DNA of 64,000 bases. Origin: Schizochytrium sp. TIO01. Lineage: Eukaryota > Protista > Bigyra: Labyrinthulomycetes. The notes under the pieces were generated by a model. It searched no databases. It saw nothing but the letters and a program-made list of their open reading frames with translations, and was not told where the DNA came from. Below are positions 20,929 through 55,681 of this stretch, one piece after another (position 1 is the stretch's first letter; every line of letters starts with the position of its first letter). The position numbers and the translations under genes were made by a program. The stretch covers positions 4,318,862 through 4,382,861 of the forward strand of contig SMSO01000025.1 of NCBI GenBank assembly GCA_004764695.1. Reading direction: 5' to 3'.

Positions 20929-22167
20929 CTATCTAAATCTGACGGCGTCGATCTGCTCGAGGGACGGCAAAGTGGCTGCGAGACGTTTACGATATTCGTA
21001 GTCCCGAGCGATTGGGTTGTGATCAAGGTAGATTGTGGACAGCTGTTCACTCAAAGGCTTGAGCTTCTCGATCTCCTCAAAAGTGGAGATGCCATTGTAG
21101 CTCATCCAAAGTTCCTTGAGGTTTGGGAGCTTATCCACAGGAAGTCCATCCATAGACTTAATCCGGTTGTTGCTCACATCAATAGTGTCAAGCTTAGTTA
21201 ACGTTTCGAGCCCACTAAACTCCTCAATGCCCTGGTGGCTTAAGTAGAGCTCTTCAAGGGACTCTAAGCCAGCGAATCCGTCCCCAATATGCCGCATCCG
21301 GTTGCTCTGTACCGAAATCCGTACAAGTTTCTTCAGCTCATCGATCCCTTCGACGCGCTCAATCTTGTTACGGCCAAGCCAGAGCTCCTCCAAATTAACA
21401 AGCTGGTTAAGGCCTTCCATCTTACGGATACGGTTCATGCCGAGATCAAGAACACGGAGTTGGGTGAGGGTCTCTAGGCCCTGGATCTTTGAAAGCTTAT
21501 TCTCTGCGACGTAAAGCCTTTCGAGCTTGGTCAAAGGAGCGAGAATAGCTGGGTCTAACTCGCGGAGTCGGTTGTACGAAATGTCAAGGTTTGTAAGGTT
21601 CACGAGGTGCTGCACGCCTTCCAAGGTGTTGAGCCGGTTTTCATAAAGCTCGAGAGACACGAGGTTAGTCAATGTTGCGAGTGCAGAAACCTCACGCACA
21701 AAATTCGATCGGAGGCAAAAGGACTCCAGGTTTGTTAGATGCTCCACGCCAGTCACCACAGTGACCTTTTGACCAGAAGTGCCAATCCACTCCAATCGCT
21801 CCATGCTTGTGTCGCTCACATCCACGACATCACCAGGTTTGATAAATCGCAGCGCAGGAGGGAGCTCTTCGTCCTTCTCGTCGTCGCTAAGATACCCCTC
21901 TTCCCCAGGCTTGGGACCTTCTTTGGCATCACCACCTTCTGCATCAGTCTTGATTTCGGAGTTGGCCTCGGATTTGGGGCCCAACATGGAAGGCGTTTCG
22001 GCCACACGAACTGTTCCGTATTGGGTAACCTTGACGCCGTTGATCTCCACCGTCTTGGGCTGAAGCTCTACAGGAAGGTCTTTCTTGTCCCCACTTTCAC
22101 CATCGACGGCGCTAGAGCGGTCTTCGGCGGAAGCCTTGGCGTCGCGAGAGGCGTCTTCATCGGACAT
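20929..22167 (-). CDS. PPP1R7: Protein phosphatase 1 regulatory subunit 7 (Sds22), LRR protein
   Basis: About 11 Sds22-type 22-aa LRRs (LxxLxLxxNxIxxIEGL) and an LRR cap 'LDHNPI..YRKRL...LPSLEQIDA'. First ATG is at 22167; the track starts at an upstream TTG (22191). Confidence 0.88.
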   Translation of the reverse strand: MSDEDASRDAKASAEDRSSAVDGESGDKKDLPVELQPKTVEINGVKVTQYGTVRVAETPSMLGPKSEANSEIKTDAEGGDAKEGPKPGEEGYLSDDEKDEELPPALRFIKPGDVVDVSDTSMERLEWIGTSGQKVTVVTGVEHLTNLESFCLRSNFVREVSALATLTNLVSLELYENRLNTLEGVQHLVNLTNLDISYNRLRELDPAILAPLTKLERLYVAENKLSKIQGLETLTQLRVLDLGMNRIRKMEGLNQLVNLEELWLGRNKIERVEGIDELKKLVRISVQSNRMRHIGDGFAGLESLEELYLSHQGIEEFSGLETLTKLDTIDVSNNRIKSMDGLPVDKLPNLKELWMSYNGISTFEEIEKLKPLSEQLSTIYLDHNPIARDYEYRKRLAATLPSLEQIDAVRFR

Positions 22168-25100
22168 GATTGCAGAAGCAGCAGAGGCCAATAGATCAAC
22201 AGATTAATCGGTGGACAGATCACGAACGCAGCTGACGACACTCAGCTAGCGAAGACCAAGTCAGCCAGGGCACCCCACGAGGGCCGTATACTAAGCTGCT
22301 CACCGCCGAGGTCTGCTGTGGCTATTCCAAGCAATATGAAAGATTGCTGCGATTTGGTATTTTCGGCCGAATCTCGAAATTTTTAATGAACATATTATTT
22401 AGATAATTCATGAAATAAATCAACTTCGAAACATGCATACTCTGTTTTGATGAAGTACGAGTATACCCAACACACGGTTTGGAGAGAGCAAATGCGAAGC
22501 AACGATTTGCTTTGGTGCATCAGCTCCTTGCAGGGTCTTCATTAGTAGTCTTTGATTGACTCAAGTAATTTGATGAGACAAATTGCTTATAAGGTTACTA
22601 ACTAGCCCAAGTAGCCCAACATAGAACCTAGATACTAGCGGGAAGTGGGTACTATTGGTGGCAAGGACTGATGCCTAGTACTTCTACTGGTCGCCAACTA
22701 ACAAAGGAATTTGCATGGAACCCCGGCATCAATGATGTACCTGAGTTGTATCATGGTTAACAACATATGGTATAGAGTACCGTCCTTTTCTCAAGCCGTG
22801 CTAAGCACACTCAAACAATATGCCTAACTTTAAACTTTGTCAGCAGTGTTATAGGAGAAATTTAATCTATTTACAATTTGAGGAAACAGGAAAGTGCTAA
22901 GGAGAAGGATTCTTTTTGGAGAGTTGGTGTACGTATTTCAATCTGAGAAGGGTCTACAAATTCGTAGAACTGACCTCTATCTTTGGTTTACGAACAGGCA
23001 AACTGCTGTAATTCGCAGCCTGCGTTACTCTATGAAAGTAATATTAGTTCTGCTTGAGTTGTAGAGTAAGTTTCAATCGTTCTAGTGGACGTTCTAGCCT
23101 GTTTTGCATTTTGAAGTCAACATAGATTAGGGGGGAAACTTTTGATCCTTCATTAAGTATGCTATTTTGACCCAGGTCATTTGGCTTCTTATTCTCAATG
23201 TTGCATTTTCTATGCAAGAATATTCATAAATCCTTGTTGTTCTCAAGTTCTAAGAACTTGGACATGGTAAATGAGATTTCACGCGTAGTTTAACAAGCAT
23301 CAAAAGACGTTTGAGGGGCTGCTCAAGCATTATTAAACAAGCCATATGTATTTGGGGTGAAACATCCGTTTAAACAGATCATAGTCTCTTCGGACTTGAA
23401 AAATGTTGAGAAAAATAATGAAAAAACAGTGAAGTATAAAAGCAAATTCCAGTGGTCAATAAGCTGAGTGGTACAATCTTATTATATGACCGCCATATGT
23501 ATGTTGTTGGTTCTTTTTACTGTTAGCGCAAAATAGTTCAAATTTAGGAGCGCAGGCTTCTTCAAACAACCACTAGTTTAACTGACACAAAACAGCAAAG
23601 GGAAGCCTTTGTGTCACGTTGGCAAGGACCCCACCTGCCCATGTGCCAACAACACGTAATAAGCTTTATACAATTCCTGAAAATGAGTTCGACATGTCGT
23701 AACGAATCTATCTTCAAAACCGAGTTTGATCCATTGCTTATGGAGGTCTGCTGATTTCAGTCTAAGAAACCCGCTTGCTTCACACACTTAACTGATGCGC
23801 ATTTGATACACATCATTTTCTTCTACAGGCCCGCCTACTTTGTAGCATCATCAATGGCTCACCTGCCCACGACAACTTCCTGTACCAGATACTCTTCGGC
23901 AAGTACAACACATCTCACCACTAACACCAAGCAGGCCGTCCTATCCTTGATTTCTACTTCTTTACACAGAATGTGTCCTCTAGAGGCACATTTAGACCCA
24001 CCAATGAATTATCATATTAGTTCATTCAGTTCATTGCATAGCGACATGATATATCAGTACCAAGTCCCTCCTAAGTAGGTATTAGAATGTTTAGTACACG
24101 AGAAAAATATATATAAAAATTTTAAAAAAATTGCCCGTTACGCCAGGTGTACAAAGCAAGTTTGTCAGCCTCTAAGACATGACGCATTTATCCGTGCTCA
24201 AGGTCACGCCTCCATAGAGAGGCATTCGACCAATGTTCGCTATCGCAGAGCTGCACTTAAATCAGCTGTGGCTCGCAAAAACGATCGATCTCTTGTTCTA
24301 AATTACTCGCCCGACACTGGTACGCATACATACATATATATATATCAGCAAGAAGTTGCGTAGAAGACCTTCGTTGCCCCCCTCCGTGAAAAGGTGCCAG
24401 GGAGGGTAACGTCTCCATAAGAGAACGATCAAATTCAACATCATTGCAAAGGAAGGGTGGCTGAAATGGTGATCACTGCCTGCCACGCTGCCTGAACGTT
24501 GCCCAAAGTCTGGATAGGAGCAGGCGCTGAGAAAAAGCTGTCAGTCTGTGCACGCCACCTCGCTGACTCAGGTACCTTGATAGTAACGCAGCGCGAGAAA
24601 TACCCTCGAGAAAGCGACCAAATCTGTGAGGTCAAGTTGATATGCGGTTCTCCTGGAACTAAAGGGAGAAAGAAAGAGCAATTGACCCATTGATCAATCA
24701 GAAACACACTATCAACTTAGTTCGAAGAAAGCAGGAACAGAAGAACATCTTAGTGCATAAAAACGGGAACTTTGATGTTACAAGCAGGTATTACAGTGGC
24801 AGGTTGCACGTTATAGAGGAGCACTTTGGCGCAGTAAGTAAACAATACACTCGACGGAAGTGGCTCCGCCGGAGGCCAAGACCTTGACGTCTCGTGGCCT
24901 TCGTGCACAGGGTGGCAAGCTGCAGGGCACGGCAGGGCACGGCAGCTTTACGCCAGAGTGTACGCACGGGGCGTATGCACTGAGCAAGTCTTGTGCACTG
25001 CGATATATCAAGGCCGCAGCACTATTTCGTGTACGTGTGCTGTCCTGATTATTTTTCATGAAGAAGGACTGAGACTGAAAGACCAAGGAACTGTTGAAGT

Positions 25101-25187
25101 CAGAAGGACAGACGCCGTAGAGCAAAGGAAGGATTATTTGCTCGCTTCCTACTTAGAGCGCAGTAACCTGTTGCGGGAGTAGGTATC

Positions 25188-28100
25188 ATGACTGGGTTTG
25201 GGTCTTCTCAGTCTGATGACAGGCCAAATAGTTATAGCCAAGGGAACACATCAAATAAACAAACCAAGAAGGTGCACGCAGCCAACTTTGACGACATGAA
25301 GTCGATCGACTCGGTTCAAAGTCATGCATCTGTAAGCACGCACGACGACGATGAAGAAGATGACAAACATGAAACAGCGCGCATGAGATTCGCATTAGGT
25401 TTCACCCTTCCATTTGATTTTGGGAAATTCTACTTGATTCCAATCACTATTATTCCTGGAATCGCTATTGCCCTTCAGCAGGGGTTATGGCGATTTGAAG
25501 ATGATTTACCACTGAAAAACCAAATTGATGACGTTGTCCAAGTCCGTGCGACAATGGACATGATCGCCCGCGATGTTGTTATCGTACTTGGATTACTCGT
25601 AACATCGTCATTTGTTGTACTGCAAATGTTCGCTGCCAACTTCCTGACACACACAATTTCATTGTTCTTTCGCAATCGAAGTCTTTTCCTTATTTTGGCA
25701 TTTATTTGTATGTCAGCAATCTTTTGTGTCGTTGTTGATACAATGGTGCATGAAGAATTCAACCTTTATATATCAATACGTATTGCATACGCACTTCGGA
25801 TGCTGTCTCTGTCCATCACCTTTCCATACTTCAATTTTCTTGTAAATTTTCTCAGTTCCGAATCACTCATTAAACAGGTGTGCGAGAATGCTGTGCAATG
25901 TCTTCATAGCCTTGGCAAGCTCGTTGTAGAGGAGAAAGGCGACTATGACGATGATGTTCTGAGTGTTCACTCAGCACGCGCATGGCTCAGTGGATGGCCT
26001 AAAGCCAGGTCAATGACACAAGATAAAATTGAAAAGGCCGTAGTCTCACACCAGGTTGATTGGATCAACGCAGTAGAACTCCTCACCGACATTGGCTTGT
26101 CAACGTTGAAGCAAAAAGACAAGGAAAATGCAAACAACGCAATGCTGTCACTTTATACTATTGCATGTGAGTATTCACATTCCAAAATGTCAGGCAAAGT
26201 TCCAGATTCTTGGTTTCTATTATCTGATCCTATTCGAATCCGCCCTGACTTTTCATCACTTTCGGTAGAGGTACTGGATAACTTAGAAAGCAAGGAGATA
26301 TGGTGCGAGTGGAAGATTTTGCGTGCTTATCAGTTGTTACTGGAGACGTCCAATACGTTGGATATGCCGAACCTTTGCGGTTTAGCAGCATTTTATACCC
26401 GCAAAATTGGTGAACTAGCAGCTCAAAGAGGCCAGCGCGAAGTTGTTGAGGTATGCATTAAGTTCTTAAACACATACATTGCTTATCTCATTCATGAAAA
26501 GAATATCCCCGTTCTTTCAGGAGTTCTCAATGAATACCGTGAGCTAGGTGTGGAGATGGTTCGTATGGATGCCTTTTTCACAAACATGATTAAAGAAATT
26601 GATAGCACACTAAGCTCCGCTGAGCGGCAACGAAAGAGTAGCGTTATTTTACGAAGCATCACCTTGGCACGTCGAAGCATGCGGGGACATTATGGTAATG
26701 CTGCAACCAATAGTACATCGCTTGATCCGCAATCATTGAGTCTGCATCACATGCGTCGTCAGCGGAAGAGTCTGGGATCTATCAGAAATGAAATTGCATC
26801 TGCTAGGCGCCAGAGTGGAGATGCTACAGCTGCAGGCTCCGCGCTTTATAATATCAAAGCAATAGCGCCTGGGAGACTTACAAATTTTATTTCTGGTATT
26901 CGAGGAACATTTATACAGGGGCAAGATGATTTTGACAACCGCTCTACGGCTCGTATGCGATCGATGAGGTCTCGGTTCATCAACCAAAAGCTTCACTATA
27001 GTAAAATGCTTGGAACTGTAGCCAATAATCTACGACAACATCTCGTTGCAAGTACAGATCATACCCTTGGAATTATTGCAGAAACAATTGCTCACGACAT
27101 GGGTGAGATCTGCGCAGAAGCGTACAAAAATGAATGTGAAGCCCATGAAGAATTATTAGCTATCTTTCTTACGCTAGATGATACACAAACTCAAAGTTCC
27201 CAACGCCAAACCCATCGAGGCATCCGTCGGTCTCAAGTTAAGCTCGCTACATACTACCTAGTTGGTGGTGACATCGAGCTAGCTAAAGAGATCCATCAAG
27301 ATATGGAGGAAGAACCCATGTTTCGAATTAGGCAAATTTATCGCGAGTTAGTAGCTATGGATACTGAAAACTTTTGGGAAATTTCATTTCGTAGCCGAAA
27401 TTTGGATTACCTCAGCCCCCCTTATCGAGCTCAATTAAAGACCTTTTTTGGATGGTTCGAAGATTTTAGCTTCGAAAAGCTAGGAAAGATGGACAATGAC
27501 CTATTTGATGTTTCCAAGAATGTTCATTTAGGAGTTAATGATGAGGACCAAGAGGGCCACTCGGAATCGAGTCTGGGTCAAGAAGAGAAAGATGAAAGCC
27601 AGGAGCATGGTTCTCCCATTGCAATGAGTACTGAGGAGAATGACGGCCAAGAACGCGATGGCGCGTCAGCTTCCCTGTGTTCTGATCGGGACGAAAGCGA
27701 AGCTGATATAAGCATGAGTGAAAAGTCGGAGGCTAAACGTCGTACAAGAGCAAGTATCGATGTTCGTCGGCGATCAATTTTAGAAAGCGACATTCGTAGA
27801 CCAAGTGTGGTTAAAAGCGAGACGGAACAAGTCTTAGAAGATCTCAACCAGAAAACTGGCTCGTTATGTTGGCGTTTGCAACTTTTTGGGGAAGATGGTC
27901 TCTTACGAATTTTTATCAACACCTCCCTTTATACCGTTGGTTGTCTTGTTGTTGGTGTTCTCCTGGACCAGTGGAATGGGAGCAGCGCCGTTCCTGTTAG
28001 TTTTACTCAATTTGAGGCCGATGTCATGATCAGTGGTTTAGCTGTTACATCCATTCTTCTATATGTGGTGTTGTGTGTGAGCTCTATGATTATCTTGCAG

Positions 28101-31100
28101 CTTGTCGCAGCGAGATATAAGTTTCATCCAGATATGCTTTCTTTTCTGCGAGATCCTATTCTCTACTTTATTTTGGCTCAAATCATGGTAAGTTGCATGC
28201 TTACTACAATGATCAGCATTTACATCGAAGAAGAAGCTGTACCAAAGCGTACGATTCGTTTTACGATCGTGCTTATTATGCTTAACATTGTGCTTTTGCT
28301 GGTTTACTATACTCGACTTTTCTTTGTTCTGCAACCAGATAGCATTCTCAACAATGTTCAACGCCGTACGCTTAGTCATGTTCGAGTTGCAATTGGCCGC
28401 ACCAACACACTCCGAAACCTGAAAAAGAAATGTGCAACAGGCACTACAAAATCACAATTTTTGCGAATGAATACTATTACAGCGCGGTACGGGCCAACGC
28501 AAAATAATACAACGGATGCAAAGGCAGAGCAGTCTGCTGCAAAAGCGTCTCTTGATAAACTTCGAGAAGAAGTATGGTATCACCAGTTCCAAGCTCATGA
28601 ACATATCAAAAGAATCTGTGATTTTGCATTCGCTTGCGTGCAAGACTCCGATGAAACAAATCTCAACAAGGCAATCTCGATACTCTTGGTCATCATTAAG
28701 GAGTATGCCGTGAGTAAGAAAAAGTTGCCAGATGAGTGGTTCGAAGTTCGTGGTTTGCTTCGTCGTACATCTGATTTTATCAACTTTTCTGCATATAGAA
28801 TTACGCTGGTTACGGAACAGCGTGTGTGGTTTGAATGGAAAGTTCTTGCACAGTATCTTCTGATATTCGATGAATGCATTAAGCTTGCTCGTGTTGATGC
28901 ATGTCAAGCAGTGACACTGAAGACCGGAAGTATTGCAAAAGGTTTCATTCAGGCAAACGATACCAATGCATACAGAGTGGCAATAAACTTTATTAATACG
29001 TTTATGCGTCGCGCAATCAATAATAAAAGCAATGAGGTTGCAGGCCAACTTGTCATGCAGAACTATATGCTTATGCAAGAGATCATTAGAACTAAGTTTG
29101 ATGAACGTACTGAACCAGTAGTTCAAGAAAGATGGCGTGCCATTATCTCAGACCAAGGTCGTTATCAAAAGTATTATGCACAAGTTGCGCTTTTGAAAGG
29201 GCTTGGAGCTATTGTTGAAAACGTAGCTATGTCGTTGAGTCAAATTTGCAGTGTTGCCCTTGAAGTTGATGAATTAGTTCACATTGACATGCTTGAGCTG
29301 CTTTTGACAGTCGATGATACGGCGGATGGAGATCAGGATTCTCTTGTGGGCATTCGTCGAGCACAAGCAAAACTTGGCCTCAAATATATAATCACAAACA
29401 ACGAGTCCTTCGCGCGGATGGTAGCAAGTGATTTTGAGGTAGAGACCTACAGTCGCCTTAAAAACATTGTAGATGAAATGTTATCAACAAATCGGGCAGA
29501 ATACTGGGAGGTGTCTGAGAATGGACTGCCAACAGAGTTTCTCTCTCATGAAGAAAAAATGCAACTTGCAACTTTTTTTACATTTGTTGAAGAAGAGAAG
29601 GCCGCGGAGGAGCTTAATAACCCCTCAGGTAGCAAACCTGCTCCACCTCTAAAACCATATATTGACGAAATTCTAGAAAACAAAACTAGCAAGCAGCTGG
29701 GTTTCCGTCCTAGGACACAGCAAGAACTCATTGACCGTCGCCGAATGGCTGGAGGATCATCCAGATCTCTACAAAGTATCGACGACAAACTCAAAGCAAC
29801 TACGAATACATTTCGTATGGGGACAGGGCGAAGTGCATCAATTTCTATCGTCAATAACCATACGAGCATTTTGGATGATGGCTTTAGTGTGTCTCAACTT
29901 GATGATTTCCTAGAGGCTATTTTTGCACAAGTGAAGGGTCAACTACCCATGCAGGAATTATGTACCAGACTTCTACTTCCTCTCACTCTGATGGGGATTT
30001 TTACGATTGTGCTGTTATCTATTAGTTTTGCTGTTGACAACGTCATGGCTCAGGACGATGAGACCATCAAATTCACCCTGAGTGATATCTGGTCCCTGAG
30101 TAACGAGCCAAAGGATACTACTTTACCTGCTGAGCTAGTCATTCGCATTTTTTCTGTGATTATGATGTGCTCATTGATTGCACTTCAAAAGTCGGCTTCA
30201 CGAGTGGTCAGGCATGTATGGATGCTTTTTCGCTCAGCACGTTGGGTACAGGTGATATGGCTACTTGATATCTGTGCTGTGAGTTTTGCATTGTTAAACG
30301 CAGGATTCAGTATTGAAAAAGCTCGACCGACACTATCTCTGATAAGTGTGATTTTGGCTTCACTTAGTGTTATGACTCTCTACCCGTACTTTTCATACTT
30401 TTTTGTCTTTCTTGACGAAAACCGTTTGCTTACCCATGTCGTTCTGCAAGATTTACGAATGCTAAATCAACTGAGTAAATCCAGCGATTCTACGTCTAAC
30501 GTTCTTCATCTTGTACATTCTCTCCAGCGTGTTGCGGATTTTGCATCATCCACAATTCGTGTCAAAGATAAAACAAACGCAATGAAATCCGTTAACGCTC
30601 TCTACTGTATTGCGCGGTGCTACCTGAATGTGAAGCAGAACCTTGAGACTTCCTTCTTTTTCAAGTTCAACGAGCTTCCAGAACTGGCATCGATGTCAGA
30701 CTTTGCACGGCTTTCAATCGACTTTCGAACCACAATCTCGGAGGACCGATCATGGGTTGAGTGGAAATTTTTAAGGCACTTGCTCATTTTGTTCCAAGAA
30801 AGTGTGGGTCATATGGCGGAAGTGTGCTACCGCATAGTTATAAGTACTCGAGAGCTCGCCGAAGCAGCTATGCGGAAGGGTGATCTTGCTCTTTTGGACC
30901 TGTCCATTAAATTTCTTAACACTTTTCTGAAGATTGCTCTAGAAAGGATGGATATTCGACTGGTGTATAATATCATGTTTCAATACCGGAAGCTAGGAGA
31001 GAATATAATAAATGGGCGTCTTCTGTCCCCGAACAACAACATCACAGCCAAAGAGTCAGATCGCTATGTCTTAGACATTGCCTTTTTCTTTCGTCATTAT

Positions 31101-34100
31101 GCTCATGTTGCTCAGTCACGTGGTATTGGTTTCGTTACTGAGTTGATCACTCATGACCTTTTCGTTCTATGCATGGCCGCCTCTCGTCGTAATGCAAAAT
31201 GTCATGATGATTTGCTCAATATTTCTCTGCAGTCATATTCAAAGGACTCTTCGATTGGCCGAAGGGGCGTCCGGCGAGCACAACTCAAATTGTCAGCGTT
31301 TTATATTGTTCAAAAGAGGATGGCTCATATGGAAAAGGTTCTTGAGGAAATACTCAGTGAAGACAATTTAGATCAAATTATTAGGGCCTATGCAGACCTT
31401 AGCGCTCCAGAAGTATCGCTGAACTTTTGGGAAATTAATGAGCGCAACTACAACATTGATCACATGATTCCTGAACAACACCGTGCGCTACGTGAACTTC
31501 TTGAACGTTTCCCTGAGAATTTGCGTGACCTGTGCCATGGATTTGAGAGCCGGGTGCACAAACGAATTGATGTCAAAGCTAACCAAGGTTCGGACAGACC
31601 AGCTTCCTCAAGCAAAAAGTCAGAAAGTACCGGAAATACACAGAGTCTTGAGTCTGTCTTTAGTGGATTTTCTCGCGAAATTGTTATTCGTGCCCGTGAA
31701 AGTGCAAAAAGAGTAGAGGCGAGGGATGCAAGTTCCGTCAATAGAAAGACAATGCGATATTTGGGCATGCAAAAAGCGCGCTTCGGCAGCACCATGCGTA
31801 TTCTCTCAACGTCAAATGCTGAAAATGGAGGAAAACCAGGTGAATCTCCGGGGTCGTCAATGGAAAACCTGAATACAGGTAGTAGTATGGCAAATGCAAG
31901 CCAGAAGGCTTGGTTTGTAGTTGTCCTGCTCCTTTTTATTGCCTTATCTGCCACTTTTATTGCCGCTGCGCTTGATTCGAATCTGAGCACAGCTCATCTT
32001 TTTCTCTTCCTGCCAAGCACCACAGTAAAAGATCGACAACAGACTCTTAAATTTCTTGGCAAGGCCTCGGTAGTCATCTTTTGCATTGTCTTGACCCCAA
32101 CCCTTATTATGCTTCAAATAAATTCTCGCCATCTATTGGGAGTGATAGCAGAGCAATTTTTCAAGGATCGGCGTGTCGCTTTTCTACTAACCTACTATTC
32201 ATCCGCGGCTGTATACTGTTTGGCAGCTCATTATGTTACAACAGACACTTATGCTCCAAGGCTAGCTGTGCTGGCCAGTGGTGCCGTTGTGGCGACATTA
32301 ATTTGCTTTCTCTTCCCTTACTTTGCCACGGTCTTTGAGTTTTTAGATCCTCACGGCGTGGTAATGCGGATGCTTAAACACTCAACAAAAGCAGTGAACG
32401 AGAGCACAACCGCTCGTAAGCCATCACACTCCAAAATTATCTTTGAGCAAATGCAGCTAGATAGGCTTTTACAGCAACTCACTGGCTTTGCAAATGCATC
32501 TTTGCGAGATAAAGACAAGAACAACTTAACGAATGTAGTTCGTGTTCTATCAACTTTTATGGAGCATTACCTCTATTTAAAAAGCCGTCTTGACCAGAGG
32601 TGGTTTGATGCAACAGGGCGTCACATGCGAATTTCTCAAGATTTCGGGTCTCTAGAGCCTGACCAACTTGTCATCATGTCAGAGACCCGGACATGGGTTG
32701 AGGCTAAGCTACTTCGTCAATTCCTGGGACTTTTTAACGAAGCGTTAGTCAACATGCAAGAAAGCTGTTTTCTTATTGCTATCGAGACAGTGAAAATTGG
32801 GCATCTAGCGATTGAAGTCCTTGACTACCACACCGTTGAGCTTGTGGTCAAGATGCTGAATACTTATTTGAGGTCTTGCTTGAATAAACGTGCTATTCGT
32901 GCGATCTACAATACTCTTCATCAATATCGGCAATTTGCTGAACTGTTAGTTATATCTTCGGCAGGACAGCATCAACCCTTGAATAAATTTGCTATCAGTA
33001 TTGCGCAGTACCTTCGCTACTATGGGTCTGTGGCAGCTTCCATGCGCATTGAATTTGTTGTTCAGGTTATTGCTTTCGACTTGGCTCGTATGTGCGAAAC
33101 GGCGTTTACACTTGGTTTCGATAACAACGTTACGAATGACCGTACTTTGGCGGAGCTTTTAGCCCTTTTTGATAGCATGCAACCAAGCACCTCGACCGCA
33201 AATGTAGTGAGTGAGTTTGAGCGCCGCGAACAGGTCTGCAAAGAGTTTGGCAATAATATGGAGTCGATTGCTCGTGCGAGCATGTGTCTCGCTACTCTTT
33301 ATCTCGAAATGGGCGATCAACATCGTGCAGACGTCATCATTGACAAACTGAACGAAAGCTGTCAACCTAATATCCTAGAACGTGCACGAGATAAAATTGA
33401 GAAGTGCACTGAGCGGGACTTCTGGGAAGCGAACGATCGGGGATCAAACTTTGATTTCTTACCAGAATCTCGGCGCGCAAAGCTCATGCAACTTTTTATG
33501 GCTCTCCGCAATGGAGAGGAGCGTCTTCGGGAGCGTGAATCTGCCTTGGTCATTCGCGCTGGAGCTGATCCAACAAAGATCAAAAGCTTGAACATGCCGA
33601 ATAGCTTGTTTGCTGCAATCCACCGTCGAGCTGCGGAGTCTCGTAGTTCAGGACTTGTGCCAGCAGTCAACAACGGACCAAGCTTGGCAACGATTAGCCT
33701 TGCCCATGCAGCGATGATGCGTAAAGTGAAGCGAATCAGAGACGCTCGGGAGCAGCATGAGAAAGAGCAGGTTCAAATTGAGCAAGATGATTCTGTTGAA
33801 ACGCAGGCACTGGTAATGCAGTCTTTCATGGGAGCTCACATGGAAGAATCAACTCGAAGCACTCGCCACCGGAATTCTGTAAGAGAGATGGCCCACGCAA
33901 CTCGTGTTCGCCAATCTCGCAGAGGAAGTGCTAACAATTTATTGTCCCTCTTTGCAGGGACGAGCAAAGCAGCACAACGTGCTCACGAAGAAAACATGAA
34001 TGAAGGTTCTGTTGTATCGTTTACCTCAGTCGCTTCGATGACTGAGACTCGACAGGGGCGAGGCGCATACAATTCAGTTGCTTCCCTCGATGGTCCAGGC

Positions 34101-36728
34101 TCTCCCGTCATGGGTCACGAGGTTGCTGCTGCTAAAGTCACGCGGAAAAAGCTTTTACCATCTCTTGTGAAAGGAGGCGGACATCACAATCACAGCCGTA
34201 ACTCAGGTGGAGGATCTACGCAAGGAAACAGGTGGGGTCAGTCATTCCTGACCATCCCATTGGCATCCTCTGCATTGCTTCTCATTCCACTGTTAATTCA
34301 GTGCCATTTTAGTGGAGTTTGCATGGCTTTAGCGTTTTCTATAGACGACAATGAACTTAAGTATAAGCTTCAGTCAGACACAGTTCGTACCATTGCCTTG
34401 ACTATGATCACCTTTCTAGGAAGTGTAGTGACTGTCTCGACTGTTGTCTTACAGATCGTCTCCACGCGTTACACACCACGCGTTGCAATTCTCTTCCTCA
34501 GAAATTTTCGAATTGTTGTGAGTCTGACAACGTTCTTTGGTTCGACTCTTTTTGTAGAACTACAAGCTGTGCAATCTTCTGAGACTGGTATGAGTCGAAT
34601 TGGCTTCATTTGGTCTATTGTTCTTATGGTTCTTTCCTTCATCTTGCTCATGCCCTATATCGCTCACTTGCTTCGGTTCCTCGACGCCGCTCACATCTTT
34701 CGAGAGATCGGTCATGAGGGGCTGGAGCTTGCTCTTGCAGACCTCCGAGGCGGCCAGCGCCCCAACAATGGGAAGTCTCAAAATAATAAGCGTAGAGTGG
34801 CGCCCGTTGATCAAACCTCCTCCGAGGAAGGTAGCAACAAAGTCATTGAGGATTCAGCTCAAGTTAAGAAGTCTGATCAACCATCTGGGCCAGGTCCAAC
34901 TGAGAATCAAGAAGGCACGAAGACAGCTAAATTCACTAGGCAACAAGGAGTCTTGCATTCTCTGGATCAAATTTCTGACTTTTCCGTGACTGCACTGCGC
35001 CTCAAAGATAAGCACAACGCATTTCATGGTATTGATTTGCTATGCGCTTTCGCAGTTGCGTACATCCAAGGGAAGCAAGAAATTGCTGAAGATCAAGGCT
35101 TAGAACACACCAAAGTTTCAACTGCTGTTAATCGGGATCCAGATTTTGTGAGTATGTCTGATGCAATTCTGTGCGACTTGGAGTCGCAGCATATTTGGGT
35201 ACTATGGAAAGCTCTACGTCAGCTGTTAAAAATGTATGAGTTGTCCTTAGGAAAGTTTAATGATGCGATCTTACGCATAGCTCGTGGCTTGCGTCACATT
35301 GGACAAGCAGCTGCATCATGTGACGATATGAACGCAGCACATCTTTGTATCAAGTTTATGAATACAATCCTTCAGCTAGCTTTAAGCCAAGAAAATCAGC
35401 GCGCTGCCGATACTGTAATGGTCCAGTATAGATTTTATTGCGAGTTTATATTAACGCAACGAGTAGTTCACGAAAGCGTTGTAGAAGATGATGAGGAGCG
35501 AATTTCTCCCTGGTCAAATCTGATTTGCGATGTTATTGGCTACTTCCATCACTATGCTCTCTCTAGTAGTCTTACACTGCGTCCAATGACAGGTCGGATT
35601 ATTCACGATATGTGCTCGCTGGCTGCATTTGCGCGTCATTTTGATTTGAAGGATATGAAGAACTATATCCAGCAGGAAATTTTCACTTTTCTGCTGGAGT
35701 GTCCTATCCCGCCTCAGAGTAACGGGCCTATCTCTGATGCTCAGAAAGTTGACCATTTACCTCGTGAGGTCCTGCGGGCTATATTTAAGCTTGCTAGTAT
35801 ATACATTTCCGAATTTGGAGATCGCGTTTCAGATGTAGGAGGCGACGTTCGCAAAATAAAAGTTGCACTCAGATATCTCCAGCCCTCCACACTTGAAGAG
35901 GTTTGGAAAGATTTTCGCACACTGAGTTTCAAAGAAGACATTCAAGTGTCTGATCGTGCCGTCAATATCGACTCGCTAACACCCAAACAAGTTGCAGCTG
36001 TAGGAATGTTTTTTCGTTCCTTTGAAGTCGATGTCACAGAAATCGAAAGTGGAGCTGATGTAGTAGCTCGATTAATGGCCCTCAAGCGTCAATCGCGTAA
36101 TGTTAACTCCGAGGAAGCTCATGCTCCACCAAATCGGAGACAATCAGTCACAGAAGAAGGTACATCACGTCGTCTCTCGGTGGCTTCAGTTGAAGCTCTT
36201 AATATCAAGAAAGAGTATCTTGATAAATCCCAAGAAAACGAGGGAAAGCCATCGTCTGAGTCTTTCAAAGGTACCTTTGACGATGAGCGAGAAAACAGCC
36301 GTAAAAGTCTTAGTCTCGAAATGGATGTCAAAAACGATGATAATGAGGAGGAGAGCGATGATGAGATCAAGTTTGCTGCTAGTATCAACCAAGCCAAAGA
36401 GCGGATTCCCAAGGAGGAAGGAGAGAATCCTAACACAGAAATTGTTGAGATGGCGAGCGACCAGTATGTGCTAGAGACTGTTGCACTTCACCCTAATATT
36501 GGTGGTAATGCGATGGAGAGTACTACGGAACTCGTCATGGAGGTTAGCCATGCTGTACAGCCGGGAGATGAAGGAGAACACGATGCTGTTATTCCGGAAA
36601 CGGGTAGAAGTGTAAAGAGTTCAGACGATCTGAATGTTGTTGATGAAGTTCAAGAGCAAGCTTCAGCAGCTGTCACAACCTTACCAAAGCCAGAGCGCGA
36701 AGATTCGTTGCAAAACATCGAGATATAA
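25188..36728 (+). CDS. Giant multi-pass membrane protein, 3846 aa, with five tandem DUF2254-like modules
   Basis: Uninterrupted 11.5-kb ORF. Each of five units has about 4-5 hydrophobic helices (LQ and PYF..FL motifs) and a soluble helical domain (KDK, WxEWK, KFLNT, RRAQxKL, FWE..R..N.D motifs). The repeat structure is seen directly; the DUF2254 assignment is from recall of 'VVLQIVSTRYTPRV..LF'. Confidence 0.85.
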   Translation: MTGFGSSQSDDRPNSYSQGNTSNKQTKKVHAANFDDMKSIDSVQSHASVSTHDDDEEDDKHETARMRFALGFTLPFDFGKFYLIPITIIPGIAIALQQGLWRFEDDLPLKNQIDDVVQVRATMDMIARDVVIVLGLLVTSSFVVLQMFAANFLTHTISLFFRNRSLFLILAFICMSAIFCVVVDTMVHEEFNLYISIRIAYALRMLSLSITFPYFNFLVNFLSSESLIKQVCENAVQCLHSLGKLVVEEKGDYDDDVLSVHSARAWLSGWPKARSMTQDKIEKAVVSHQVDWINAVELLTDIGLSTLKQKDKENANNAMLSLYTIACEYSHSKMSGKVPDSWFLLSDPIRIRPDFSSLSVEVLDNLESKEIWCEWKILRAYQLLLETSNTLDMPNLCGLAAFYTRKIGELAAQRGQREVVEVCIKFLNTYIAYLIHEKNIPVLSGVLNEYRELGVEMVRMDAFFTNMIKEIDSTLSSAERQRKSSVILRSITLARRSMRGHYGNAATNSTSLDPQSLSLHHMRRQRKSLGSIRNEIASARRQSGDATAAGSALYNIKAIAPGRLTNFISGIRGTFIQGQDDFDNRSTARMRSMRSRFINQKLHYSKMLGTVANNLRQHLVASTDHTLGIIAETIAHDMGEICAEAYKNECEAHEELLAIFLTLDDTQTQSSQRQTHRGIRRSQVKLATYYLVGGDIELAKEIHQDMEEEPMFRIRQIYRELVAMDTENFWEISFRSRNLDYLSPPYRAQLKTFFGWFEDFSFEKLGKMDNDLFDVSKNVHLGVNDEDQEGHSESSLGQEEKDESQEHGSPIAMSTEENDGQERDGASASLCSDRDESEADISMSEKSEAKRRTRASIDVRRRSILESDIRRPSVVKSETEQVLEDLNQKTGSLCWRLQLFGEDGLLRIFINTSLYTVGCLVVGVLLDQWNGSSAVPVSFTQFEADVMISGLAVTSILLYVVLCVSSMIILQLVAARYKFHPDMLSFLRDPILYFILAQIMVSCMLTTMISIYIEEEAVPKRTIRFTIVLIMLNIVLLLVYYTRLFFVLQPDSILNNVQRRTLSHVRVAIGRTNTLRNLKKKCATGTTKSQFLRMNTITARYGPTQNNTTDAKAEQSAAKASLDKLREEVWYHQFQAHEHIKRICDFAFACVQDSDETNLNKAISILLVIIKEYAVSKKKLPDEWFEVRGLLRRTSDFINFSAYRITLVTEQRVWFEWKVLAQYLLIFDECIKLARVDACQAVTLKTGSIAKGFIQANDTNAYRVAINFINTFMRRAINNKSNEVAGQLVMQNYMLMQEIIRTKFDERTEPVVQERWRAIISDQGRYQKYYAQVALLKGLGAIVENVAMSLSQICSVALEVDELVHIDMLELLLTVDDTADGDQDSLVGIRRAQAKLGLKYIITNNESFARMVASDFEVETYSRLKNIVDEMLSTNRAEYWEVSENGLPTEFLSHEEKMQLATFFTFVEEEKAAEELNNPSGSKPAPPLKPYIDEILENKTSKQLGFRPRTQQELIDRRRMAGGSSRSLQSIDDKLKATTNTFRMGTGRSASISIVNNHTSILDDGFSVSQLDDFLEAIFAQVKGQLPMQELCTRLLLPLTLMGIFTIVLLSISFAVDNVMAQDDETIKFTLSDIWSLSNEPKDTTLPAELVIRIFSVIMMCSLIALQKSASRVVRHVWMLFRSARWVQVIWLLDICAVSFALLNAGFSIEKARPTLSLISVILASLSVMTLYPYFSYFFVFLDENRLLTHVVLQDLRMLNQLSKSSDSTSNVLHLVHSLQRVADFASSTIRVKDKTNAMKSVNALYCIARCYLNVKQNLETSFFFKFNELPELASMSDFARLSIDFRTTISEDRSWVEWKFLRHLLILFQESVGHMAEVCYRIVISTRELAEAAMRKGDLALLDLSIKFLNTFLKIALERMDIRLVYNIMFQYRKLGENIINGRLLSPNNNITAKESDRYVLDIAFFFRHYAHVAQSRGIGFVTELITHDLFVLCMAASRRNAKCHDDLLNISLQSYSKDSSIGRRGVRRAQLKLSAFYIVQKRMAHMEKVLEEILSEDNLDQIIRAYADLSAPEVSLNFWEINERNYNIDHMIPEQHRALRELLERFPENLRDLCHGFESRVHKRIDVKANQGSDRPASSSKKSESTGNTQSLESVFSGFSREIVIRARESAKRVEARDASSVNRKTMRYLGMQKARFGSTMRILSTSNAENGGKPGESPGSSMENLNTGSSMANASQKAWFVVVLLLFIALSATFIAAALDSNLSTAHLFLFLPSTTVKDRQQTLKFLGKASVVIFCIVLTPTLIMLQINSRHLLGVIAEQFFKDRRVAFLLTYYSSAAVYCLAAHYVTTDTYAPRLAVLASGAVVATLICFLFPYFATVFEFLDPHGVVMRMLKHSTKAVNESTTARKPSHSKIIFEQMQLDRLLQQLTGFANASLRDKDKNNLTNVVRVLSTFMEHYLYLKSRLDQRWFDATGRHMRISQDFGSLEPDQLVIMSETRTWVEAKLLRQFLGLFNEALVNMQESCFLIAIETVKIGHLAIEVLDYHTVELVVKMLNTYLRSCLNKRAIRAIYNTLHQYRQFAELLVISSAGQHQPLNKFAISIAQYLRYYGSVAASMRIEFVVQVIAFDLARMCETAFTLGFDNNVTNDRTLAELLALFDSMQPSTSTANVVSEFERREQVCKEFGNNMESIARASMCLATLYLEMGDQHRADVIIDKLNESCQPNILERARDKIEKCTERDFWEANDRGSNFDFLPESRRAKLMQLFMALRNGEERLRERESALVIRAGADPTKIKSLNMPNSLFAAIHRRAAESRSSGLVPAVNNGPSLATISLAHAAMMRKVKRIRDAREQHEKEQVQIEQDDSVETQALVMQSFMGAHMEESTRSTRHRNSVREMAHATRVRQSRRGSANNLLSLFAGTSKAAQRAHEENMNEGSVVSFTSVASMTETRQGRGAYNSVASLDGPGSPVMGHEVAAAKVTRKKLLPSLVKGGGHHNHSRNSGGGSTQGNRWGQSFLTIPLASSALLLIPLLIQCHFSGVCMALAFSIDDNELKYKLQSDTVRTIALTMITFLGSVVTVSTVVLQIVSTRYTPRVAILFLRNFRIVVSLTTFFGSTLFVELQAVQSSETGMSRIGFIWSIVLMVLSFILLMPYIAHLLRFLDAAHIFREIGHEGLELALADLRGGQRPNNGKSQNNKRRVAPVDQTSSEEGSNKVIEDSAQVKKSDQPSGPGPTENQEGTKTAKFTRQQGVLHSLDQISDFSVTALRLKDKHNAFHGIDLLCAFAVAYIQGKQEIAEDQGLEHTKVSTAVNRDPDFVSMSDAILCDLESQHIWVLWKALRQLLKMYELSLGKFNDAILRIARGLRHIGQAAASCDDMNAAHLCIKFMNTILQLALSQENQRAADTVMVQYRFYCEFILTQRVVHESVVEDDEERISPWSNLICDVIGYFHHYALSSSLTLRPMTGRIIHDMCSLAAFARHFDLKDMKNYIQQEIFTFLLECPIPPQSNGPISDAQKVDHLPREVLRAIFKLASIYISEFGDRVSDVGGDVRKIKVALRYLQPSTLEEVWKDFRTLSFKEDIQVSDRAVNIDSLTPKQVAAVGMFFRSFEVDVTEIESGADVVARLMALKRQSRNVNSEEAHAPPNRRQSVTEEGTSRRLSVASVEALNIKKEYLDKSQENEGKPSSESFKGTFDDERENSRKSLSLEMDVKNDDNEEESDDEIKFAASINQAKERIPKEEGENPNTEIVEMASDQYVLETVALHPNIGGNAMESTTELVMEVSHAVQPGDEGEHDAVIPETGRSVKSSDDLNVVDEVQEQASAAVTTLPKPEREDSLQNIEI

Positions 36729-44154: not shown

Positions 44155-47100
44155 ATGGCGGACCTCATTGACGCGCAACATAAGGTCGAAACAAGCATTG
44201 GCGTCCAGCGAAGCGTGGATGGCCTATGGGCGTTGCTCGTTAAGCACAAGACAGGAATTATAGATCATGGAGAGCTCGTCCGGTTTGTCAGTTGCTTGGC
44301 CAAGACATTGCTTGCAGGTTGCTCAAATGATCAAGCCACCGCAACAGCGCGGCAAGCACTTGAAGCTACACAGAGCATGGACAAACAAGCGTTTCAAACA
44401 TTTATGATTAATCTTGCGCATGTCTACTGTGAGTCCTTTGATCCTCTGGAATATGAAGCTTTCTTTGTTGGGCTCAAGATTCGTATTTCTAGGGCAGCAG
44501 TTGTAGTGCCTGATCTGAAGGAACCTGTAGAATTGGTAGCTCGTATTAATAAGGTAGCTATCGATGAGGATGATGATAAACTAGAATCGTTCTGGAAATT
44601 ACAAGCAAGGTCAGGTATTAGTAACACGTGGACTCCTGAGGCTATCAAACCTTTCAAAGGAGGTGCCAAAGCAGCTCAACTGATGGTGTTCGAGGTTGCT
44701 TCTACCACTGCAGCTGAGCACCTTCAACAGAGTGGATCTTCCTCAAGCTTGAGCTTTCCCGTAATCTCCCAGAGTCTTACGGATTTGGATAATGTCACTG
44801 CGATGCCTTCACATATTGGTAGCAAGGATCCCAAAGAGGCTCATACATTCTGGTCACCTCAGGTGGCTGCACAAGCAGATACTAAACTCCCCCTAATCGA
44901 CGCTATCCTTGCCAGATACAAGGAGCACTTTGGATCTTCAACGAGCAAAGCCGTTTTTGCTTCTGCATATGCCCATCAGGGATTAGAGTCGGGATTCCCG
45001 CCGCCGCAACCGCCAACACAGCCCATGGAACACTCTAGCGTGATTGCAGGTGGAATTGGATCCCGGTCTCCGCACATTGCTATTGTCGGCCTTCCCCGTT
45101 CAGGAAAGTCATCTGTTGCACGAAACCTGTGCAAGCGCACAGGATTTCAGTATTTGACACCCGCTGAGGTTGCTGGTCAAAACCTTAGCCTCTTCACGGA
45201 ACGTACGGGGGGATTTGTCCTCGACATTAGCGAGACTCTAGCATTAGATGAAAGCTCTACTGCGCCAACAACTGTAGTGCATCTCAAACTGCATTCTCAG
45301 GATGCACAATCCCGACTTACATCAATGAAGATTCACCGGGCGAGTGATAACGTATTCACGGGCGCTGAAGTCCGTGCTTTACAGGCTCAAGAAGCAGAGG
45401 CAGAGGCAGCTGCAGCAGCAGCAGCAGAGGCTCGCCTCCTTCGGAAGAAAGCGCGAGAAGCTCGAGCCGCAGTCCGAGCTGCAGCTCTAGCTGCAGGTGA
45501 AGAACCTGCTGAGGAGGAAGACGAGGAAGAAGAGGAAGAGGAGGAAGAACTGCAAGAGACTCAAGGAAACACAGAAGAAGAAGCCGAAGGTGAAGGAGAG
45601 GGTACTGAGAAGCCAATCAAAATCCACTCCTCGGATCTCGAACCTCTTTACACAAGTGATGAAGTAGAGCAAATGATGAGTTCCCATGCGAATGCTATCC
45701 AACAAGTTCTTAGCAGTGCTTCTCAAGTCATTACTGTGGATGCAAGCCAGAACCTCGATGTTATGTTAGAACAGACATTCAATCACCTTTCGGATGCTTT
45801 GGGGGGGCTCCCAGATAACAATTTTGTTCGTGCTTATTGCACTCCGCGTGCCCTCCTTTACAAACCTCCAGCCGTACCCAGTGACGAGGAAGAGGGAGAA
45901 GTGGAGGCCGAACCACCTCTAGAAACCCCTGAAGAAGAACAAGAGCTTCGATTGCAACTGCTTTACAATGTCGCAGTCGAATATAAGAAAGAGGATGAGA
46001 ACCCTGGCGAGGAAACTGAGGAAAAAGATGAAGATACTCCTGAAGTAGAACCAGAGAAGTCACCCGAACTTGCCAGCTTTAGACATTTATCAGCGTGGGG
46101 CTTAATTTGTCCTGTCACTTTGGAGGAGGGTCGAGCTCGTTATGCAGTTCTTTGGCGTGGTCATGTCTACTTTTGCTCACAACCATCAGCATTAGAAACA
46201 TTTATGGAGAACCCTTCTCAGTTTGCATTACGCACGCCAGTTTCTGCGGGTCGTGTGCTTGTTGTTGCTGCAAGTGCAGAATTAGCACATAAAGCGGCTG
46301 AATCGCTAGCTAAATCTAACACATGGACTGACATGTCCATGGCTGCGGGTGCATGGTACGACCTAAAGCCGCCCGAACAGGATACTGAAGCAATCCAAGA
46401 TCCTCCTCCTTCTGAGGAAGATGGGCTGGCCCAAGCCGAGGGTGTCGAATCAAAGCCACCTCCGGTTCACCCTCTTAGTGCTATTCTTAGTGACAATCGC
46501 TGGACACTAGCTCTCGGAGCCGAAGTCACAACCCCTGAACAAGCGTTTGGTGTTTTCCAGTCAGCAGAACGTATGCCTCGTGTAGTGATTTATGCTAAAT
46601 TCGAAGACCCCCCCTCTTCTGAGCAAGAAGAGGTGGGACTAACGCCCGAACAAGATAGTGCTGTCCAAGATGGCTCAGCCGAAACAACTCAAGGTGAAGA
46701 ATTAACTGAGTCCAAACCACCCCTTGACTTAATGGCAGAACCTTGGGCAGCTTTGGCCCAAGAAAGGGGTGTCACATTCATCAGTACGAGTATCCCATTT
46801 ACAGAAAGTAGAGAAGATCTCATTGTGCCATTCAACGAGCCATTGTCTCAAATAGCTCCACAGCTTGACAATCTTTTTGCTGCTAAAGCTATTGAGGAAG
46901 GAGCATATAAAAAGTTGCTGGGCTGGTCCCAGAATTATTGTCCTGTCGTTTTTATGAATGAAAGCCGTCTTGTGCCTGGCAAGCCTGAGTTTACTGCCTT
47001 TCATGACAAAGCATTTTACACGTTCTCTTCCGCAGAATCGATGGCAAAGTTTAAAGAGCAGCCATCAACCTACCAGAGACCTTTGGACTTACAGCGACCA

Positions 47101-54454: not shown

Positions 54455-54654
54455 GGCGCCGCCCTCGCCTCAGCGCCCGCGCAAGCGCTCCAGACGCCGC
54501 CACGCCGCCTCCGACGGCAGCGGACGGGCCCGCGGATCCTCCACGCCGCCCCGCCCTCCGCCGCTCCGCGACACCGCCGAGCCCTCGCCGAGCGAAGGGG
54601 TAATGAATGAATGATCTCTCAACTTCTTTTCCTCCTTCTTCTTCTTCTCTCTTT

Positions 54655-54960
54655 CTATTCTATTCAATTCATTCTTCTCTTTCTATCTATTCATTCTATC
54701 TATTCTATTCGTTCTATTCATTCTATCTATTCATATTCTATTCATTCTATTTATTCATTCTATTCATTCTATTCATTCTATTCATTCTATTCATTCTATT
54801 CATTCTATTCATTCTATTCATTCTATTCATTCTATTTATTCATTCTATTCATTCTATTCATTCTATTCATTCTATTCATTCTATTCATTCTATTCATTCT
54901 ATTCATTCTATTCATTCTATTCATTCTATTCATTCTATTCATTCTGTTCGTTCTGTTCAC
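54655..54960. repeat. (ATTCTATTC)n 9-bp minisatellite, about 300 bp
   Basis: Near-perfect array upstream of the Tudor/ankyrin gene. It generates the spurious ILF/HSI/SFY ORFs in the track. Confidence 0.97.
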
Positions 54961-55320
54961 TCCAATTCAAATCACTTCTTCGCTTTCAATTGATTATTGA
55001 ACATTCATTCCCTCTCAATCTCTGATCTTTTACAACATCTTTCTTCTCCCTCTTATTCTTCCTAGCTACCTGCTACCACATAGCACCCGCCTACCGCCCG
55101 CTACCCTTATAGGACCTACCTACGCCTCTCTACCCCCATATTGGCGCCCATATCTGTACTTAATATGTATATATATCTTCGCCGTGAGGATTCATTTCTT
55201 TATTTCTTTTAGCTTACTTACAGACTACTACTGCGCGCCTATTGGCTCCTACTGCGCCCTCCTTCCAAATTTTTCTCCTTCGTCTCTCCTAGGCCTCTCG
55301 CTAGCCCTCGCTATCCCCCG

Positions 55321-55415
55321 ATTGTCCACTTGCAGGCCTCCAATTGTCTACTTGCAGCCTCCAATTATCTACTTGCGGGCGCCCATTGTGCACTTGTGGC
55401 CCCCCATTGTCTACT
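55321..55415. repeat. Degenerate 21-bp tandem repeat, about 4.5 copies
   Basis: ATTGTCCACTTGCAGGCCTCCA / ATTGTCTACTTGCAGCCTCCA / ATTATCTACTTGCGGGCGCCC / ATTGTGCACTTGTGGCCCCCC / ATTGTCTACT. Confidence 0.8.
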
Positions 55416-55650
55416 ATCAACGGTCTTGCTCATCGCAGTAAGTAAGTGGGATGTTCTCTGTGTCTGTTTATCTAATAACCCAAACAATCAAAATCCAAAG
55501 TTAACATTTCTTCCCTTTACTAAGTTTCTACATAATTAAACAACATCAACAACATACTACCCTCATCTACTCTAAACTATATAAAGCAGCACTAGAGAAG
55601 AAGAAAAAACCAATTAACAAAGAACAAATAACAAAAAAACAAAAAAAAGA

Positions 55651-55681
<31 letters not shown>

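Follow-up and report, generated by a model that had tools for sequence, protein, structure and literature searches.

A five-module DUF2254-type membrane protein in the thraustochytrid Schizochytrium: a candidate single-chain pseudo-pentameric channel

The genome of the thraustochytrid Schizochytrium sp. TIO01 (assembly GCA_004764695.1) carries, on contig SMSO01000025.1, a single open reading frame (ORF) of 3846 codons that encodes five diverged copies of one membrane-protein unit related to DUF2254. We analysed this gene within a stretch of 64,000 nucleotides (positions 4,318,862 to 4,382,861 of the forward strand; hereafter the window, whose own numbering is used throughout). An earlier note, made from the letters of the window alone, had described the gene as one intact frame and had proposed that its product is a pseudo-pentameric channel or transporter. 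The ORF listing bears out the first of these claims, as the frame contains no internal stop across 11.5 kb; in addition, a protein identical to the 3846-residue product (P0001) is present in another public assembly. The parts of the gene are given below, with the bounds of the five modules (M1 to M5) set by a profile made from the five units and with transmembrane abbreviated to TM.

25188..36728, + strand: the whole five-module ORF, intact, 3846 codons plus stop, ATG start.
25398..27560, + strand: M1, residues 71-791.
25401-25847, + strand: TM domain of M1, residues 72-220, followed by an alpha-solenoid with a low-complexity insertion of ~130 residues.
27561..27866, + strand: linker M1-M2, 102 residues, rich in Ser, Glu and Arg, poorly conserved.
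27867..29690, + strand: M2, residues 894-1501.
27870-28325, + strand: TM domain of M2, residues 895-1046.
29691..29939, + strand: linker M2-M3, 83 residues.
29940..31610, + strand: M3, residues 1585-2141, the most diverged of the five.
29970-30407, + strand: TM domain of M3, about residues 1595-1740, with Arg and Lys on the face of TM helix 2 (TM2).
31611..31913, + strand: linker M3-M4, 101 residues.
31914..33587, + strand: M4, residues 2243-2800, the module used for modelling.
31911-32339, + strand: TM domain of M4, residues 2242-2384.
33588..34244, + strand: linker M4-M5, 219 residues, rich in Ser, Ala, Arg and Gly.
34245..36110, + strand: M5, residues 3020-3641.
34248-34676, + strand: TM domain of M5, residues 3021-3163, with an insertion of ~80 residues past TM4.
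36111..36725, + strand: C-terminal tail, 205 residues, acidic, rich in Glu and Ser.

When the five units were aligned, they were found to share 18-26% identity with the first unit and to have 21 invariant columns. All ten pairwise BLASTP comparisons between modules gave E-values of 4e-16 to 2e-40 (70-144 bits, 20-27% identity), as compared with 29.6 bits for the best of 100 shuffled modules; the strongest of them (E 2e-40) joins M3 to M4, even though M3 on its own has no Pfam match. The five-fold repeat is far beyond chance. Each of the 25 short motifs listed in the earlier note is present once, at the position given for it and in the same order in every module, and the unit ranges proposed there lie close to our profile-derived bounds. 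Hydropathy analysis revealed four hydrophobic helices per module, followed by a helical soluble domain, which brings the total to 20 TM helices, at the lower end of the 20-25 that had been predicted.

The assignment of the repeat to DUF2254 (PF10011, InterPro IPR018723), which had been proposed without database searches, held up in part. PF10011 matches the whole protein in four stretches (E 1.3e-31, 110.2 bits), well above its gathering cut-off of 28.8 bits. Taken singly, M5 (71.8 bits) and M4 (39.2 bits) exceed this cut-off, M1 (26.6 bits, profile positions 13-168) and M2 (24.7 bits) fall slightly below it, and M3 gives no match to PF10011. The matches are confined to positions ~3-186 of the 368 in the profile, that is to its TM half, and do not extend over the full profile; the same limit is seen in the Polyangium protein P0012, in P0010 and in the eukaryotic single-module relatives. 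The rest of each module, ~350 residues, is an alpha-solenoid not covered by any Pfam model. The likeness to DUF2254 therefore holds for the N-terminal TM half, and the C-terminal solenoid sets these proteins apart as a distinct long-form subfamily.

At E up to 0.001, a profile search over 1.84 billion representatives returned 3054 relatives. Hundreds of proteins of ~500-550 residues match the five-module profile almost end to end (positions ~10-570 of 594, E 1e-60 to 1e-125), and those of the top single-module matches that carry names are labelled DUF2254 family proteins and come from Myxococcota (Polyangium, Kofleriaceae). A genome scan identified 390 encoding stretches, the best 80 of which are nearly all from Polyangia, and the ESM Atlas points to Cyanobacteriota as well as to Myxococcota. 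Single-module prokaryotic relatives, as expected from the sequence alone, thus exist, and at 25-29% identity the bacterial proteins are as close to the window's modules as these are to one another. Across 97 sequences, the long-form motifs KDK, W-E-K, F-x-N-T, Q-Y-R, R-G-V-R and F-W-E-x-x-D-R are nearly invariant. These data indicate that the modules belong to a long-form subfamily in which a DUF2254 TM domain is joined to a C-terminal domain outside current Pfam coverage.

With canonical DUF2254 proteins the modules share a four-helix TM domain, a (V/L)Q pair in TM2, an R-Y/F-T-P motif past TM2 (M5 retains the bacterial-type form, RYTPR) and P-Y-F in TM4. They differ from them in having the C-terminal half replaced by, or diverged into, the ~350-residue solenoid, and in being present as five copies per chain rather than one. 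The Myxococcota long-form proteins (Polyangium WP_136965780, Kofleriaceae HET6610696; ~520-550 residues) are closer counterparts, as they match a module through both TM domain and solenoid (E down to 1e-110, 25-29% identity to M4) and have the same motif order; unlike the thraustochytrid protein, however, they consist of a single module, so that any oligomer they form would be a homo-oligomer. DUF2254 has been treated as an AlphaFold-predicted knotted or slipknotted membrane family without an experimental structure (PMC11184937). The literature that we searched mentions DUF2254 and contains nothing on its function, nor anything on thraustochytrid channels. PADLOC and NCBIfam scans of the modules gave no match, and a role in anti-phage defence was rejected.

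A structural model of M4, generated using AlphaFold2 from 97 sequences, was all-helical and of high confidence, with a predicted local distance difference test score (pLDDT) of 92.6 and a predicted template modelling score (pTM) of 0.90. It consists of four TM helices (2-31, 46-92, 94-116 and 124-152) followed by about 17 further helices, and its confidence indicates that the solenoid is rigidly fixed to the TM bundle. In Foldseek searches of the PDB the whole module matched only a designed toroid (E 2e-5, TM-score 0.31) and helical repeats. A second, Foldseek-independent fold search returned HEAT/ARM-type solenoids over residues ~85-554 at Z 13-18, which is roughly the level reached by any helical repeat. 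When modelled separately, the TM domain reached a pLDDT of 88.1, and a sequence-profile search of the PDB found nothing credible; as modelled, neither the TM domain nor the solenoid resembles a solved structure. Many charged and aromatic residues of the solenoid are nearly invariant (KDK, W-E-K, FxNT-R, QYR, RGVR-AQ and FWE-DR), a pattern that would fit a binding site for a ligand or partner.

The number of modules was the property that the earlier note had set beforehand as a test of the pseudo-pentamer idea. We found five in every multi-module relative, three of which are N-terminally cut. Among the Labyrinthulomycetes, the complete proteins P0002 (from Hondaea), P0003, P0004 and P0005 each have exactly five modules, at identities down to 34%. 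Five were also identified in P0006 (a GC-rich sequence), where the first is cut by the sequence end, and in transcripts from the ancyromonad Fabomonas tropica (P0152) and the collodictyonid Diphylleia rotans (P0008), in each of which the first is likewise cut, making five a lower bound for these three. The top of the profile search holds seven multi-module representatives, including the window's own protein and two of P0003-P0005, and otherwise single-module proteins or fragments. Proteins with two, three, four or six modules were absent from the top of this search, the sole other multi-unit case being P0009, a fragment of 871 residues with two partial modules. Since module scores are additive, any protein with several modules would be expected at the top of this ranking. 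Single-module eukaryotic homologues were found in Amoebozoa, namely Mastigamoeba (three), Mastigella, Planoprotostelium and Phalansterium. The observed module counts are thus one or five, so that the test set by the earlier note came out on the side of the pseudo-pentamer.

The Schizochytrium genome itself (64 Mb in 37 contigs) contains two further genes of the family.

C13:1610081-1612795 (L006:511-3225): a single-module paralogue of 904 residues, with the module at residues ~130-712.
C13:2783904-2785154: a canonical DUF2254 gene, 587-residue open frame, matching PF10011 positions 3-366 with 144.6 and 99.9 bits.

The single-module paralogue has an orthologue in Hondaea (P0052, 71% identity), and its TM2 region is highly diverged. 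The paralogue is also 60% identical to a protein that bears the label Durusdinium trenchii, a match that may reflect contamination of that assembly or gene transfer. The thraustochytrid genome thus holds canonical, long single-module and five-module forms of DUF2254.

Conservation was next compared across the length of the chain. Between Schizochytrium and Hondaea, identity is 66% in M1, 70% in M2, 60% in M3, 70% in M4 and 69% in M5, as against 39% in the linkers and tails, where gaps make up 28%, and the higher conservation of modules than of linkers is repeated in three more distant orthologues. All five modules are thus equally constrained, with none decaying, in agreement with the earlier description of an old and maintained gene.

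This even constraint is accompanied by residues that are particular to individual modules. With positions numbered after P0012, the TM2 face common to the family comprises T76 (83/97 sequences), I80 (87/97), Q/E83 (90/97), L84 (85/97) and R88 (87/97). At three positions of TM2, residues particular to each module are conserved in all five Labyrinthulomycete species, as follows.

Position 65: R in M1, V/L in M2, E in M3, K in M4, L/V in M5.
Position 69: I in M1, L in M2, R in M3, V/M in M4, T in M5.
Position 84: M in M1, L/V/T in M2, K in M3, I in M4, I in M5.

Arg69 and Lys84 of M3, both on the presumed inner face of TM2, are kept in all five orthologues. Such a fixed asymmetry is what a pseudo-symmetric assembly would predict, and it would be harder to explain if the five units acted independently.

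We then used ESMFold2, without an alignment, to model four copies of the P0012 TM domain (residues 1-180). The score was 0.46, compared with 0.00 for the best control, a result in favour of binding; in a calibration carried out on two copies rather than four, 21 of 30 solved homodimers attained this score and none of 23 solved monomers did. Runs had at least 51% of contacts in common, with a partner pLDDT of about 59. Contacts were head to tail, with residues 111-125 of TM3 lying against residues 144-155 of TM4 in the next copy, and neighbouring copies also made same-residue TM2-TM2 contacts at positions 58, 65, 69 and 80. The pattern in the model is that of a cyclic ring with TM2 innermost.

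Together, these data suggest the following arrangement. Each module consists of four TM helices and a rigid alpha-solenoid of ~350 residues that is most likely cytosolic; as the TM helices of a module are even in number, the five modules lie the same way round in the membrane, connected on the solenoid side by disordered linkers of 83-219 residues. Side by side, the five modules would form a pseudo-five-fold ring, echoing a homo-oligomer of the single-module relatives, in which TM3 of each module packs against TM4 of its neighbour and a central conduit is lined by the five TM2 helices. The lining would be formed by the family-wide Thr76/Ile80/Gln-or-Glu83/Leu84 face and be made asymmetric by module-specific charges, namely Arg in M1, Glu in M3 and Lys in M4 at position 65, together with Arg69 and Lys84 of M3. 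Functionally, the protein could act as a gated, channel-like conduit whose ring of solenoids senses a cytosolic signal. On balance we favour some ring-like assembly between modules, and we put the probability of the full statement, a pseudo-pentameric ring with a channel-like conduit, at about 0.45. Indirect support for the pseudo-pentamer proposed in the earlier note comes from the fixed count, the module-specific TM2 residues and the four-copy TM model, and the pore and its conductance are parts that we infer.

The closest parallels for such a protein lie among channels to which it is unrelated. As in Nav, Cav, NALCN and the two-pore channels, the subunits of a putative homo-oligomer are fused in one chain and the repeats have then become individual. 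The repeats of Nav and Cav carry their own conserved pore residues (DEKA/EEEE), to which the R/V/E/K/L series at TM2 position 65 may be analogous. There is, however, no relation to these channels in sequence or fold, and the protein has five repeats of four TM helices each, without a voltage sensor or P-loop. Pentameric ligand-gated ion channels (pLGICs) and bestrophins resemble the proposed assembly in being made of five subunits with four TM helices each, and in having a central TM2 (here in the four-copy model) that contributes rings of Thr, Ile/Leu and Glu/Gln; bestrophin, moreover, has an all-helical cytosolic domain. Their subunits are separate chains, whereas here there is one chain, and to our knowledge concatenated pentamers exist only as engineered constructs. 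An example of such engineering is given in PMC5839718. Membership of either family was rejected: for pLGICs (extracellular beta-sandwich domain plus PF02932 TM domain) there was no Pfam match at E up to 1, the model is all-helical and no fold match was obtained, and for bestrophins (PF01062) there was no Pfam match and none appeared among the Foldseek or VIA matches of the module or the TM domain.

A number of observations weigh against the proposed ring, or against parts of it. The four-copy model was alignment-free, has a pLDDT of about 59 and lies outside the two-copy range of its calibration, and it does not separate four subunits from five or six. Compared with solved structures, the TM domain matched generic bundles at best (Foldseek E 1.3, VIA Z 10.9). 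The single-module paralogue in the same genome makes stoichiometries besides five possible. As for the gene and its history, the public contigs described below are consistent with an unspliced gene and do not in themselves prove a single mRNA; the deep nodes of the module trees are short and weakly supported under a simple model; and the lineage grouping on which the case for separate amplifications depends could also be produced by co-evolution of modules or by gene conversion between them.

One alternative is that the modules are five independent units, like beads on a string, each a membrane-anchored sensor or scaffold with a solenoid platform, and that the number five was merely inherited, with no ring or pore. 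The confident, self-contained AlphaFold2 model of a single module would suit this arrangement, as would the long, disordered linkers and the nature of alpha-solenoids, which are typical protein-binding scaffolds and which gave the HEAT/ARM-like matches at Z 13-18. It would also sit well with the bacterial gene neighbourhoods. We examined 44 diverse Polyangia loci (within L042-L087), 40 of which had callable neighbouring genes. In 17 of these 40 loci a response regulator of the REC-GAF-HD-GYP type lies downstream at a distance of at most two genes and, with few exceptions, in the same orientation (for example at L055:7683-9233), and this regulator has a sub-threshold match to NosR-family cyclic di-GMP phosphodiesterases. 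A type III pantothenate kinase lies divergently upstream in 10/40 loci, and a Ser/Thr kinase is found nearby in 5/40. This suggests that bacterial long-form DUF2254 proteins are tied to cyclic-nucleotide signalling, with lineage synteny as an alternative; the eukaryotic gene, unlike many of those in Myxococcota, has no such regulator following it. Independent units, however, would be hard to reconcile with counts of one or five without intermediates across very distant eukaryotes, with the equal conservation of all five modules, with the module-specific TM2 residues kept among orthologues, and with a TM domain that self-associates in the model where controls do not. For these reasons we consider independent units unlikely.

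The protein might also form a ring or other oligomer that serves in transport, lipid handling or enzymatic catalysis instead of acting as a channel, in which case the polar residues of the solenoid would be a catalytic or substrate site. Although these near-invariant charged and aromatic residues exceed what a passive scaffold would need, searches of Pfam, NCBIfam, PDB sequences and folds returned no likeness to an enzyme or transporter, and the four helices of a module make a small bundle for a carrier, which together leave a non-channel activity improbable in our view.

A related reading keeps the ring and adds to it, either as a 5+1 hexamer completed by the single-module paralogue or as a pentamer enclosing the TM helices of a partner, like the 5:2 MotA/ExbB/PorL complexes, in which ion flow would be turned into work or a signal. 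The paralogue is indeed kept both in this genome (904 residues) and in Hondaea (P0052), but the divergence of its TM2 region speaks against a place in the same ring. Likewise, TM4 has an invariant Pro in its PYF motif and the membrane segments carry conserved Thr and Gln/Glu, residues that recall the proton path of 5:2 stators, and PorLM (7sat_B) is among the fold matches of the TM domain, at Z 8.4 over 108 residues. That score, however, is within the noise of helical bundles, no MotA_ExbB match (PF01618-type) was found in Pfam at E up to 1, and no small single-TM partner gene recurs at the 40 bacterial loci. We consider this reading improbable as well.

Sequence data from other sources bear on whether the gene is a single unit. 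Twenty public runs, none of them recorded as RNA, contain the window's stretch or part of it, and in four of these 20 the contigs are colinear with the window and free of intron-like joints. One of the contigs extends over 29400-34512 and thereby crosses three linkers. The Fabomonas and Diphylleia proteins are each encoded by one Trinity transcript that spans more than four modules. An assembly or annotation artefact, in which five adjacent genes are read as one, was therefore rejected as highly improbable, given a frame without a stop over 11.5 kb, an identical protein obtained independently in a second public assembly, five-module orthologues that include Trinity transcripts, and colinear contigs free of joints across 29400-34512.

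Phylogenetic analysis was used to ask whether the five-module form arose once. In module trees, same-position modules form clades with 100% support within Labyrinthulomycetes and 97-100% support between Fabomonas and P0006, and no thraustochytrid module pairs with any module of the Fabomonas type. Forcing same-position orthology between the Labyrinthulomycete and Fabomonas-type proteins gave a log-likelihood 87 units worse and was rejected (approximately unbiased test, p-AU 0.001; 34 rows, 524 columns, LG+G4, fast search), the best tree being one of lineage-specific module clades. Furthermore, RFTPL is found past TM2 in all modules of Fabomonas and P0006; in the thraustochytrid protein the RYTPR of M5 is the commonest bacterial form, and M1-M4 differ from both. 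These data are suggestive of independent five-fold amplification in two lineages. The eukaryotic sequences grouped together with 90% support in the Shimodaira-Hasegawa-like approximate likelihood ratio test (SH-aLRT) on a very short branch, with P0010 between eukaryotes and bacteria; a horizontal acquisition from bacteria, as raised by the earlier note, may underlie this grouping.

The nearest named orthologue, the Hondaea fermentalgiana hypothetical protein P0002, has 4157 residues and is 60% identical. Residues 1-485 of its gene model are an N-terminal extension rich in Ala, Glu, Lys and Ser, for which tblastn found no counterpart in window positions 22000-25400; this extension may stem from a mis-joined exon or have been added in that lineage alone, and, because it has no upstream counterpart in the window, the ATG at 25188 is a plausible start. 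The adjacent ORFs are eukaryotic, encoding RagA/Gtr1, PPPDE-ubiquitin-PUB, sulfatase, leucine-rich-repeat, FAP206-containing and ankyrin proteins. The FAP206-like segment lies in an ORF of 1797 residues (44155-49548, + strand) that also has several weak matches of the P-loop/AAA type, and implies a flagellated life stage, as expected of thraustochytrid zoospores. Further along, positions 52001-56000 show strong strand asymmetry (GC skew -0.22 to -0.26, AT skew -0.50 to -0.30), lie partly inside an ankyrin/Tudor ORF of 1481 residues (50009-54454, - strand), and look like a long biased or low-complexity stretch.

As far as the literature shows, the five-module architecture is unpublished. Our boldest formulation, which we offer tentatively, is that this is the first natural single-chain pseudo-pentameric channel, derived from a homo-pentameric DUF2254 pore of bacterial type that was concatenated independently in at least two eukaryotic lineages (Labyrinthulomycetes and the Fabomonas-type lineage), with modules that then specialised to give an asymmetric pore lined by TM2, much like the DEKA ring of sodium channels. 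If this is true, no other natural channel with five repeats in one chain is known to us; the protein would be the counterpart of Nav and Cav with their four repeats, and fusion to exactly five may have occurred more than once. The patchy eukaryotic spread of a mainly bacterial family, across Labyrinthulomycetes, Amoebozoa, an ancyromonad and a collodictyonid, is also relevant to the study of gene transfer in the distant past. For DUF2254, large as the family is, neither a function nor a solved structure is known, and natural concatenation would give the stoichiometry of its oligomer from sequence alone; the fixed number of five thus leads to a specific hypothesis, in which five subunits form a ring with TM2 as its lining and particular residues can be chosen for mutation.

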